A stretch of DNA of 63,753 nt, the filler included, from Olpidium bornovanus S191 (taxonomy: Eukaryota > Fungi > Olpidiomycota): NCBI GenBank assembly GCA_017911155.1. It is 32 parts of 32 records of this genome, joined end to end, with 100 filler letters (N's around TTAATTAATTAA, not from the genome) between each part and the next. Parts side by side here need not be neighbours in the genome. Positions count along the whole stretch, not along the records: positions 59,706 to 62,206 come from JAEFCI010002324.1; 31 more parts are not named here. One strand, given 5' to 3'. The position numbers were made by a program, and so were the translations under genes. A model generated the notes under the pieces. The model worked only from the letters and a program-made list of their open reading frames with translations, ran no database searches and was not told where the DNA came from. Shown piece after piece: positions 59,706 to 63,132 of the stretch; positions within the stretch are counted from its first letter, which is position 1, and the number at the start of each line of letters is the position of its first letter.

Positions 59706-61362
59706 AGAAACGGACACGGCGGACGAACTATTCGATAGTCCAGTGATACCGGGGCTGGAGCCATTTGATCCAGCGCACGGAATTGACATTCTCAATTACC
59801 TTGACGACGTCGAAAGGAAGTTCATGAAAGAGGAAATTTCTTGGTCGTTTTGGGGATCGCTTGTGGCATCACGACTTCCAACACCTCTCAGAGAAGCAGT
59901 TAAATTTGACTGGCGGACCGGCAACGTGATTCAACCCTGGAATTGGTCTAGGATAAAACAGTCCGTCGGCACACGCGCCCACGGATGGGGCGGAGATCTC
60001 GCTTCTTTATATCTTAGCAAGTTGGAGAACATTGAATGGGACCCGTCCGAGGGATACCTCGGCTTCACCCAAAAGGCCCTGACATATTACATCCAGTGGG
60101 CGAACGCCGCCGGATACCCGGAGAAAATACGCGACGGGGAACAACTCCAGCGTAATTTCCTCCTCAGGGCTGTCAAAAATAAGCTGCCGGAGCTTTTAGC
60201 AAAGGACCTTCCGAACCCGGACAAATTAACGTGGCGGGAGGCAAGTACGATTTTGGACGAAGCGTACAAGCGCCATTGCGAAGTCGGGACTCCAGGCATT
60301 GCGTCGCCGGAGTCCGCGCCCGGCACCCGCCCTCCCCCCCTAGAAGGGGAAGAGTTCCGTCGGTTTCCCGAGGTGTTTGCCAAGTCGGATCCTCGCGTCT
60401 TTGCGGACTCTTCGCTTACGCGCGACGGGACCAAAAGACGCGTGGAGTGTTCGCCGACGGCGACGGCGACGGCGACGCCTTCGCCGCCTCCGCCGCGGCA
60501 TCTGAACGACCTCGCGCGTCGCACAGTTCCGGAAGACCAGAAGAAGAGGACGAGGTGCCGAAACAGGCCGTGTTATAATTCCAGGTGCGCGTTCGCCCAC
60601 GAACCGGGCCAGAGTCGGGCGGCCCGAGGAAGGTCGGCCGAGTCCGGCGGCGGCTGGACCGCCGAGAGGAGGTCGCCGTGCACGAAACTTTTTAGCGTCG
60701 AGTGCCGGAACTACCCCTGCAGCCGGCCGAGCTGCACCTTCAGACACTTAAAGAGCCAGAAGCCCTGGAAAGCGGAACGCGAGGGCGAGCGAGCTGACGA
60801 GGAGGTAAGGAAGCGGGGCCGCGACCCGGACTACTACGACAACCATTACCACCGGGGCGGCGGCGACCACCGCCACCACCGTGTCCCCCGCGATCTGGCG
60901 GCGGAAGTCTCTCCCAGCCGCCGCGCCAGGGCCAACGGCGGCCGCAGCGTCCGGCTGGAAAAGGACGGCAGGGGCGGCGTCGGCAGGACCGACGACGGCT
61001 GGTGGGAATCAAGGGACGAGGGGCGGCCGCGCAGGCGAAGTGCGCAGAACGCGTCGTCGGGGTTGGCTGAGTTTGCACGCGACGACGACGGCCGCGGCGA
61101 CGTCCTCGAGGGGCGCGACGGGTGCGGCGACGACGAACGTCGAAGGAGCCCGTACCGCCAGTCCTTCGCGACGGGCCCCAAGCGCCAGCGACGGTCCGAC
61201 GACGAAGTTGGCGTCCGGCCTCGCGAAGCCGACCGCGGCAGCGGCAGGGCGGCCCTCACGGGATGCGCCCGGCCCTGGCAGGCAGACATCGACTGTTGGT
61301 ACAAGCCGTGCACGAACCGAAACTGCAAGTACCGTCACCGCGAGGGCCAGTGGCACGCTTAA
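59706..61362 (+). CDS. Gag/capsid-like protein with three C-x4-C-x4-C-x3-H zinc fingers, intronless, 5'-partial (at least 551 aa)
   Basis: Frame is open from the contig edge to TAA at 61360-61362. Capsid-like LEPFD..DILNYLDDVERKF...W...L...WNWSRIK...LSKLENI...EGYLGF...FLLRAV...LTWREASTIL; fingers at 60556-60600, 60703-60747 and 61294-61338. Confidence 0.75.
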
Positions 61363-63132
61363 TGGGCAAACCGCCGTCGGGTTTTACGACGTTGACGCCG
61401 CGGAGAAAGTGGGCAAGAGAGAAAGAAGAGCCGCGCGGAAGAATACGTCAAGGCACCTTTTCAGGGGGAGAGGGAGGAAGGGAGGAGGGACAAACCGTCG
61501 TTATGCTTATCACGGCAGAACCCGATACTCCCCCCCCCCCCCATCAGCCCCGCCTGGGGAACAGTTTCCCGGGAAGCCGCTACTTTATTTGGACAAATCC
61601 GCGAAAGGCAGGCGCTGGCCGTGTTGACCATTAATAAATTACTCGCGCATGTTCAAAAACAACAAGGAAGAGAGAAAAGAAAAAAGAAGGAAAAAAAGAA
61701 AGAAGCGAGGAAGCGCATCATTTTGCTTCGCTGCTTCGCCAATTTCGGAAAGTTGGCCCCATGCAAACGAAAGAGAAAAAAGTCTTCTGTTTTTTCGTTG
61801 TTTCGCGGACGTCAAACAAGCAACAGAAAAAAAAAAATAAAAAATAAAAAATAGAACCGGCGCATCAACAAACTACCCGGTCGAGGAAAAGCGTTTCCTC
61901 CCCCTACCTCTGGCTTGATCCACACACGGACAAACAGGAGGGAAACAACAAAAAAAGGAAAGAAAAATAAAAATAGAAAAGCTGCGATTCGCACACCCTT
62001 CTTGTTTCGCCGGATCAGAGAGAGATTCCGGCCCGAATCCCACGCTTCCCCAAATTGGGAAAGGAAAACAAAAAGCGAACTGGAATCATGGGTGATGTTA
62101 GAGATAGAACTTGTGGAAACTGCTGGCGTGCAGTTGTCATAGTTAGATTGCACCGATTGGAACCCCTTGATGCTTGTACCCCTTTATGTACAGTAGTGTT
62201 GCTCTCNNNNNNNNNNNNNNNNNNNNNNNNNNNNNNNNNNNNNNNNNNNNTTAATTAATTAANNNNNNNNNNNNNNNNNNNNNNNNNNNNNNNNNNNNNN
62301 NNNNNNCATGTGGCGTCAAGTTTTCCAAAGGCATTTTGCCGGCTGGTAAAAAGCGGAAGCGAGAAGACGGCGACAGCGGCGCCGGGAATACCAAGTCCGC
62401 CGGAAAGAAGAAGGCGAAAGGCGAGAAATAGAATTGACGGAAGACAGTTTTGTGTCTATCACGGAGACGGATTGAGAAGAAAATGAAGACCGCGAAAAGT
62501 TCTCCATTGCGACTTCCGTCCGCTTTTGCGTGATCTGGTCTTCCTTACGCTAATTCTCTTTTGATATCCCGGCCGAACGTTGCCCCCACGCCCCCCCCCC
62601 TTCCCTACCCCCTCTCCAATCTCTACGCTGTCGTTTTAGTTCTGTGCTCCCTCATCCACAGGCTAGGTCCCCGGCGGCGCGACTCGCAAAATGATCACCC
62701 TCGATTTTGGTCCCCGCAATACGCTTTCTCACTGATCTTGCACATTGCCTGGGTCGCTTGTATCATACCCCTGTTCCGAACCACATCACACAATCACTTT
62801 AAAAAATGTGCGGACGAGAAAACGGAAATTTTTTTGACTGAAGCTGGAATTTGTCACGGGGAATGATAACGCGCCGCGTCACGTGCCGATGCGAAAGGCT
62901 TTATTGCGGCTTTTTCTTTTCTTTTTTTCTTCTTTTTTTGGGGGGCTTGCGGGGAGGGGGTGGGGATGAGACCAATAAGGGAGTGCCGCGGAAACGGTGG
63001 TCCCTGTACAGTACAGCCTTCCTTCGGATATGTTCTTCCCTCCATAGCCTTGGAAAAGTTATGAAATCGCCTGTCGACTAAGAGACGGTGACTAAGTTAT
63101 AATTAATGCCGAAGGGAACATTATGGCAGGCG

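Follow-up and report, generated by a model that had tools for sequence, protein, structure and literature searches.

A long reading frame in the root-parasitic fungus Olpidium bornovanus raises the question of whether a fungus can keep the capsid module of a retroelement Gag protein as part of a stand-alone gene, with CCCH zinc fingers in the place where Gag proteins carry their knuckles. The frame lies between positions 59706 and 62206 of the 63,753-nucleotide stretch of joined genome parts from strain S191 that was analyzed here (hereafter the window). This span is the whole of contig JAEFCI010002324.1 (2501 bp, identical sequence), which belongs to the O. bornovanus metagenome-assembled genome (MAG) GCA_017911155.1. 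Among zoosporic lineages, Olpidium is the nearest to the terrestrial fungi.

The answer that we favor, and offer tentatively, is that the locus encodes a gag-only, self-associating RNA-binding protein that was probably co-opted. Under this proposal, an intact, intronless gene of ~894 codons would derive from the gag gene of a long terminal repeat (LTR) retroelement and would now stand alone without pol. Its product would have a long disordered N-terminus, a probable coiled coil, a two-lobed domain with a capsid fold, and three Nab2-type CCCH fingers that occupy the position of the Gag nucleocapsid knuckles and are surrounded by disordered stretches rich in Pro or in Arg, Gly, and Asp. Self-association may be driven by the coiled coil together with the capsid-like lobes, as it is in Arc, in PNMA2, and in the Gag of retroelements, and the fingers together with the basic disordered regions may hold single-stranded RNA, possibly A-rich as with Nab2 fingers. 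The outcome would be a multimeric RNA-binding assembly. A host (co-opted) rather than a mobile status is what we infer from the surroundings of the gene and from its relatives.

The features on which the argument draws are given below. Residues of the open reading frame (ORF) are counted from the contig edge, and P0003 and P0004 are two relatives found by database search.

59707 to 61362, plus strand: 3′ part of the ORF, 551 codons plus stop in one uninterrupted frame; the 5′ part is on contig JAEFCI010010311.1.
59706 to 59826, plus strand: junction of the two contigs, which falls within the gene; these 121 nt also form the end of JAEFCI010010311.1 (positions 1328 to 1448 of that contig, L001).
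59779 to 60300, plus strand: predicted all-alpha domain resembling a retroelement capsid (CA), ORF residues 25 to 198, placed by the phmmer spans common to P0003 and P0004, an AlphaFold2 model, and Foldseek.
59788 to 60027, plus strand: predicted first lobe of this domain (helices at residues 28 to 41, 46 to 54, 59 to 65, 80 to 92, and 96 to 107 of the AlphaFold2 model).
60052 to 60285, plus strand: predicted second lobe (helices at residues 116 to 134, 151 to 159, 162 to 165, and 176 to 193 of the same model).
60301 to 60555, plus strand: Pro/Thr/Arg-rich linker, predicted from its composition to be disordered.
60556 to 60600, plus strand: CCCH finger 1 (C-x4-C-x4-C-x3-H), matched by PF22683; fingers 1 and 2 jointly score 32.5 bits.
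60703 to 60747, plus strand: CCCH finger 2 (C-x4-C-x4-C-x3-H), matched by PF22683 and by the spacing motif.
60748 to 61293, plus strand: low-complexity stretch rich in Arg, Gly, and Asp that separates fingers 2 and 3, placed by composition.
61294 to 61338, plus strand: CCCH finger 3, the best Nab2-like match (PF22683, 36.3 bits alone), which aligns to the structure 4lj0.
61363 to 62206, no strand assigned: 3′ flank with falling GC content (0.41 to 0.59) and no pol, LTR-like repeat, or tRNA by Pfam, blastn, and tRNA scan.

From the contig edge, the frame is open for 551 codons (59707 to 61359), with its stop at 61360 to 61362. The longest open frame in each of 1000 shuffles that preserved local composition had a mean length of 176 codons, and none exceeded 467. 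Along the ORF, GC content climbs from 0.48 to 0.73; past the stop it drops again. In the GC-rich half, GC content at third codon positions (0.83 to 0.86) exceeds that at first positions, which in turn exceeds that at second positions, and this order is kept up to the last finger. The coding-frame pattern is therefore continuous through the ORF.

The gene continues upstream on a second record. The start of JAEFCI010002324.1 and the end of JAEFCI010010311.1 (1448 bp) share an exact overlap of 121 nt, and the last 40 residues of the protein deposited for the latter (P0002, 383 aa, labeled “partial”) are the first residues of the window frame. Approximately 343 further codons are contributed by that contig, counted from an ATG, giving a whole ORF of ~894 codons when the overlap is counted once. 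The ATG sits 299 bp into the contig, downstream of a run of ~45 T residues (at 45 to 84, some 220 bp 5′ of the ATG). The N-terminal part encoded there, of ~340 residues, is rich in Pro, Ala, and Ser and is predicted to be disordered, with no match to a Pfam family; its last ~50 residues look helical. This helical stretch, which precedes the capsid-like domain, is probably a coiled coil. In its form, the 121-nt overlap resembles that between neighboring unitigs of a de Bruijn graph, with one gene split over two records.

Three CCCH fingers of equal spacing (C-x4-C-x4-C-x3-H) are present at ORF residues 284 to 298, 333 to 347, and 530 to 544, with gaps of 34 and 182 residues between successive fingers. 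The Pfam family PF22683 (Nab2-like CCCH zinc finger) recognizes three stretches with a total of 48.5 bits, well above its gathering score (27). Among PDB sequences, the only meaningful match is to 4lj0 (E 0.019), the Nab2 fingers of Chaetomium thermophilum, whose structure was solved with polyadenosine RNA bound (PMC3874189). The low-complexity sequence between the second and third fingers is strongly biased, with residues 351 to 520 consisting of 21% Arg, 14% Gly, and 12% Asp. A motif scan found no knuckle of the form C-x2-C-x4-H-x4-C in the Olpidium protein, in P0003, or in P0004. An earlier note on this DNA had described an uninterrupted frame of at least 551 codons in which three CCCH fingers and an Arg/Gly/Asp-rich region take the place of the knuckle, and these descriptions hold: the frame is longer than the longest in any shuffle, and the fingers and the biased region are found by profile, motif, and composition.

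The protein deposited for this part of the gene has a different sequence across these fingers. The model (P0001; BJ554DRAFT_5385, a MAG hypothetical protein of 519 aa spanning 59824 to 61362) retains ORF residues 40 to 230 and 353 to 502, and its splicing substitutes other reading frames for the stretches that contain all three fingers. For this reason, neither a zinc finger nor a Pfam domain is seen in the public protein, and the combination of capsid-like domain and fingers is invisible in the public protein record. The genome had been repeat-masked ahead of annotation, which was carried out with MAKER using predictors trained on Rhizopus (PMC7865070). We considered the spliced NCBI/MAKER model as the true product and rejected it, given that Pfam recognizes all three fingers in a single frame, that the codon-position signal is continuous, and also that the predictors were trained on Rhizopus. 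Because the three fingers are recognized in one frame and the codon-position signal runs through it, the uninterrupted, finger-bearing ORF appears from its sequence to be the better gene model.

Fingers of this type could mean that the gene is simply the Olpidium ortholog of Nab2/ZC3H14, which binds poly(A) in the nucleus, and that its N-terminal domain has diverged. The score of the fingers above the Pfam cut-off and the match to 4lj0 agree with such an identity, as does the order of parts, since an Arg/Gly-rich region and a helical domain precede the fingers in Nab2 as well (PMC6371209). However, members of the Nab2/ZC3H14 family have a PWI-fold N-terminal domain and carry three to seven fingers clustered in tandem at the C-terminus (PMC6371209), whereas the Olpidium fingers are dispersed, with the two gaps given above. 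Its helical domain lies ~365 residues into the protein, no Nab2 N-terminal family of Pfam is matched by P0002 or by ORF residues 1 to 200, and Foldseek returns capsids rather than PWI domains. In addition, P0003 and P0004 each have a single CCCH motif of different spacing. Lacking a PWI-fold N-terminal domain and a tandem cluster, the protein is most improbable as a Nab2 ortholog, and we rejected this assignment.

What the helical domain resembles instead is seen from its predicted structure. The AlphaFold2 model of residues 1 to 200 is all-alpha with nine helices (mean predicted local distance difference test score, pLDDT, 74.9; predicted template modeling score, pTM, 0.50). When this model was compared with the PDB using Foldseek, ranks 1 to 9 were held by murine leukemia virus CA, Arc (human, rat, and solution structures), a foamy-virus capsid, the PNMA2 capsid, and a SCAN domain. 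Retroelement capsids thus make up eight of the top nine matches, with dArc, Rous sarcoma virus CA, and human immunodeficiency virus (HIV) CA lower down. The Arc capsid 6gse is matched with a probability of 0.98 and template modeling (TM) scores of 0.52/0.62 over 170 columns, and the second lobe matches the C-lobe of dArc2 (6sie, TMt 0.69) as well as SCAN domains. Against BFVD, almost all of the top 25 matches are caulimovirid coat proteins, retroviral or foamy-virus Gag, and ORF1 of a Penicillium metavirus, the best E-value being 0.03. The order of the helices and the matches to the two-lobed Arc and CA structures suggest the division into two lobes given above.

Relatives of the protein are few. 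An exhaustive phmmer search of 1.84 billion representative proteins found four proteins, namely the two fragments of the gene itself and the two relatives. P0003 (408 aa; JGI metagenome 3300041509) is matched at E 3e-8 with 26% identity to the Olpidium protein, and P0004 (618 aa; Logan SRR31320648) at E 1.3e-5 with 28% identity; the two are 36% identical to one another over the domain and the Cys/His motif. At 26 to 36% identity, synonymous sites among the three members are saturated. Both relatives are intact ORFs and share the same order of parts: a disordered and coiled-coil N-terminus, the capsid-like domain, and then a CCCH motif, whose spacing is C-x5-C-x6-C-x3-H in P0003 and C-x5-C-x5-C-x3-H in P0004. 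A capsid-like domain followed by CCCH is the conserved layout of a small and very divergent family, in which the Nab2-type spacing is specific to Olpidium. A word-indexed protein search with an alignment as query was swamped by low-complexity matches and recovered only the gene’s own model, and a search with P0004 residues 345 to 605 returned P0004 alone. Scans of metagenome and viral contigs with alignments of the family gave no confirmed further relative.

Within the C-terminal 70 residues of P0003 and P0004, a second motif, C-x2-H-x4-H-x4-C, directly follows the CCCH motif (at ~1210 to 1320 of L003, the P0003 contig, and at ~1900 to 2010 of L004, the P0004 contig). Its spacing is that of a retroelement knuckle whose second Cys is replaced by His, and it is absent from the Olpidium protein.

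The predicted structure of P0003 returns the same fold class. Its model has pLDDT values of 70 to 89 over the shared domain and a pTM of 0.33, with long helices at residues 2 to 48 and 51 to 92 preceding the domain. Retroelement capsids occupy 49 of its top 50 PDB matches by Foldseek, and its matches include PNMA2 (8rb3, probability 0.99, E 0.037), dArc1, HIV-1 CA, the copia capsid, and HERV-K Gag. Although every single match is weak, the predicted structures of two sequences that are only 26% identical bring back a single rare fold class almost without exception, which is hard to attribute to chance. On this basis, we consider it likely that the domain has a capsid fold.

Several results weigh against the reading of the locus as a stand-alone gag derivative, some of them bearing on the fold and others on the status of the gene. 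With respect to the fold, ORF residues 1 to 200 match no Pfam family at E ≤ 10 and no family of NCBIfam or PHROGs. Searches of PDB sequences with the protein or with the three-sequence profile gave no capsid match, returning only Nab2 fingers and noise, and for P0003 and P0004 there is no relevant Gag or capsid family of Pfam at E ≤ 1. All Foldseek matches have E-values above 1e-3 (0.16, 0.03, and 0.037 at best), and both AlphaFold models were built with moderate confidence on the same shallow alignment of three sequences. Moreover, the fingers of P0003 and P0004 are spaced differently from those of the Olpidium protein and fall below every Pfam cut-off, so that the combination of a capsid-like domain with a Nab2-type finger is strictly a property of one protein.

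These results would fit a protein unrelated to Gag, in which a lineage-specific CCCH RNA-binding protein carries a helical domain whose likeness to capsids is confined to AlphaFold models of low information content. No sequence method links the protein to a Gag family, all Foldseek E-values exceed 0.01 with TM-scores of 0.2 to 0.6 and large root-mean-square deviations, the pTM values of the models are 0.50 and 0.33, and bundles of short helices are common folds. However, capsids form a small share of the PDB and BFVD libraries, and yet the two models return little else (8 of the top 9 PDB matches for the Olpidium protein, 49 of the top 50 for P0003, and about 25 of the top 25 in BFVD). The capsid matches also span both lobes over 170 to 230 columns with Foldseek probabilities of up to 0.98 to 0.99, and zinc fingers stand at the nucleocapsid position in all three members. 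We therefore judge an origin outside Gag to be unlikely.

The earlier note had read a Ty3/gypsy capsid pattern directly from the sequence of this domain, a claim that sequence comparison does not support, as the Pfam results above show. Its more general proposal of a capsid-like fold fares better, being backed by the Foldseek comparisons of AlphaFold2 models, with E-values of 0.03 or worse, and receiving no backing from sequence comparison. Because membership of a Gag family was sought by sequence and not found, the link to Gag is through predicted fold only.

Whether the gene stands alone is a separate matter. In LTR elements, pol normally overlaps or abuts gag. Past the Olpidium stop, 844 bp hold only short low-complexity ORFs, without a Pfam match to protease, reverse transcriptase, RNase H, or integrase; the absence of reverse transcriptase and integrase had also been remarked in the earlier note. 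Similarly, no pol-like ORF is found within 459 bp after the stop of P0003 (on L003) or within 173 bp after that of P0004 (on L004). A blastn comparison of the 299 bp upstream of the gene (on JAEFCI010010311.1) with the 844 bp downstream revealed no direct repeat, only poly-T/poly-A low complexity, and there are no terminal repeats on L003 or L004. A tRNA scan of all four loci found none, and Rfam at E ≤ 1 gave only sub-threshold chance matches. Each database cluster consists of one member on one contig, and no second copy or paralog was found among 15 billion proteins, including metagenome and Logan gene calls (the source genome having been repeat-masked before annotation).

Within the limits of the contigs, a Gag-like ORF is thus intact and without pol in three members that are 26 to 36% identical. 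We favor a stand-alone, possibly co-opted gene because pol is missing from its LTR-element position in the two members with enough downstream sequence, because the known flanks share no repeat and no collection holds a second copy, and because the frames have stayed intact at this level of divergence and the protein is much longer than a usual Gag.

Alternatively, the protein may serve as Gag in a mobile LTR retroelement. Such an element could be autonomous, with pol and LTRs that lie beyond the contigs, or gag-only and nonautonomous, with pol supplied by another element, and CCCH would be the form that the nucleocapsid takes in this lineage. The succession of coiled coil, capsid fold, and zinc fingers is the canonical Gag order, and the C-x2-H-x4-H-x4-C motif beside CCCH in P0003 and P0004 has knuckle spacing. 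The remaining points that tell against a stand-alone gene belong here as well. Known flanking sequence amounts to 299 bp upstream and 844 bp downstream, and LTRs or a distant pol could lie beyond it. The exact, k-mer-like overlap at which the gene passes from one contig to the other resembles a fork in the assembly graph, and such a fork could reflect alleles or copies. Repeat masking preceded the annotation of the genome (PMC7865070), and additional copies may for that reason not have entered the protein databases. Finally, members of the family are very few and have diverged very strongly, a distribution that would also suit the fast-evolving genes of a mobile element. Nevertheless, no protease or reverse transcriptase is encoded in any frame where pol would be expected, over 844 bp past the stop in Olpidium and 459 bp in L003, the known flanks have no terminal direct repeat, and the protein searches revealed neither a second copy nor a paralog. 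A protein of ~894 aa with ~340 disordered N-terminal residues would also be long for a Gag. A mobile Gag is accordingly a possibility that we regard as rather doubtful.

An additional candidate was ORF1 of a long interspersed nuclear element, a protein that combines a coiled coil with an RRM/CTD or with CCHC knuckles and is followed by ORF2 (endonuclease and reverse transcriptase). This candidate was rejected because there is no Pfam match to an ORF1 or RNA recognition motif family, no CCHC motif, and no downstream ORF, and because the fold matches are to capsids of LTR elements and retroviruses.

If the stand-alone reading is correct, the Olpidium protein would work most like proteins of the Arc/dArc1, PNMA2, and PEG10 type, which combine a capsid module with an RNA-binding part and lack pol. 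Arc and dArc1 are neuronal genes derived from Ty3/gypsy Gag. They share with the Olpidium gene a helical or coiled-coil region followed by a two-lobed capsid domain, encoded by a stand-alone intronless ORF without pol, and they are among its best structural matches (6gse as given above; dArc1, 6s7x, probability 0.98). However, there is no detectable sequence similarity, and the matched mammalian Arc structures are capsid domains only, whereas the Olpidium protein has long disordered regions and three CCCH fingers in addition. Arc has been shown to form capsids and to transfer RNA, activities for which the Olpidium protein is a candidate. PNMA2 and other PNMA/RTL proteins such as PEG10 are alike in the match of the capsid fold (8rb3, with the P0003 model) and in the retention of Gag without a working pol. 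They belong to another kingdom and have no sequence similarity to the Olpidium protein, and the zinc motifs described for co-opted Gag and gag-like proteins in the literature searched are CCHC knuckles, in contrast to its Nab2-like CCCH fingers.

The Gag proteins of Ty3/gypsy elements, retroviruses, and caulimovirids resemble the Olpidium protein in its predicted capsid fold and in having nucleic acid-binding zinc motifs C-terminal to that fold. By contrast, the Olpidium protein matches no Gag family of Pfam and lacks a CCHC knuckle, and its gene has neither pol nor LTRs within the known flanks.

Closer in taxonomy are Crtg12 to Crtg14, three co-opted gag genes of Dikarya that are single-copy and gag-only (Wang & Han 2021, PMC8321522). 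These genes were defined by orthology across families and by synteny, and their sequences were traced to Ty1/copia and Bel-Pao elements; CCCH fingers are mentioned nowhere in the paper (PMC8321522). The Olpidium gene would likewise be fungal and gag-only, and perhaps single-copy, but it comes from Olpidiomycota and has no sequence link to any element. In view of these cases, an independent fungal co-option of Gag is not in itself as new as the earlier note had supposed (PMC8321522), whereas full-text searches of the literature found no description of a capsid domain paired with CCCH fingers.

Capsid-building co-opted Gags such as Arc, PEG10, and PNMA2 are known mainly from animals, the described fungal cases being the three genes of Dikarya. 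If our reading is correct, a stand-alone protein with a capsid fold in Olpidium would extend the range over which gag-only genes are known, and Nab2-type CCCH fingers replacing knuckles would represent a new way to join a capsid module to RNA recognition. Gag co-option in fungi being known already, the new points would be its occurrence in Olpidiomycota and the substitution of Nab2-type fingers for the knuckle. One can go further and speculate that the three genes belong to an old, small family of stand-alone Gags, present in Olpidium and in unsampled microbial eukaryotes, whose co-option took place independently of that in animals and in Dikarya, and whose products join a capsid domain to CCCH fingers (Nab2-type in Olpidium) and form capsid-like shells around polyadenylated host RNA. 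We consider this extended proposal quite improbable as a whole; were it true, the family would be a fungal counterpart of Arc and PEG10 with a different RNA-recognition device.

Some further observations concern the source and surroundings of the sequence. The MAG was assembled with MEGAHIT from non-axenic zoospores and was binned by tetranucleotide composition (PMC7865070), so the assignment of its contigs to Olpidium rests on that binning. The contigs that carry the genes measure 1.4 to 2.5 kb and hold no neighboring gene. In the window, the coding region forms a GC-rich island (up to 0.73) amid flanks with GC content of 0.41 to 0.48. Several alternative-frame and antisense ORFs of 110 to 250 codons overlap its GC-rich half on both strands (60087 to 61356) without a family match, and these are what a GC content of 70% yields by itself. 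The 3′ flank contains a run of 12 C residues (61530 to 61541) and A/purine-rich simple sequence (61640 to 61990). On L003, two imperfect direct repeats (~60 and 39 nt) are located 3′ of the P0003 gene at 1601 to 1789, spaced 90 to 105 nt apart.

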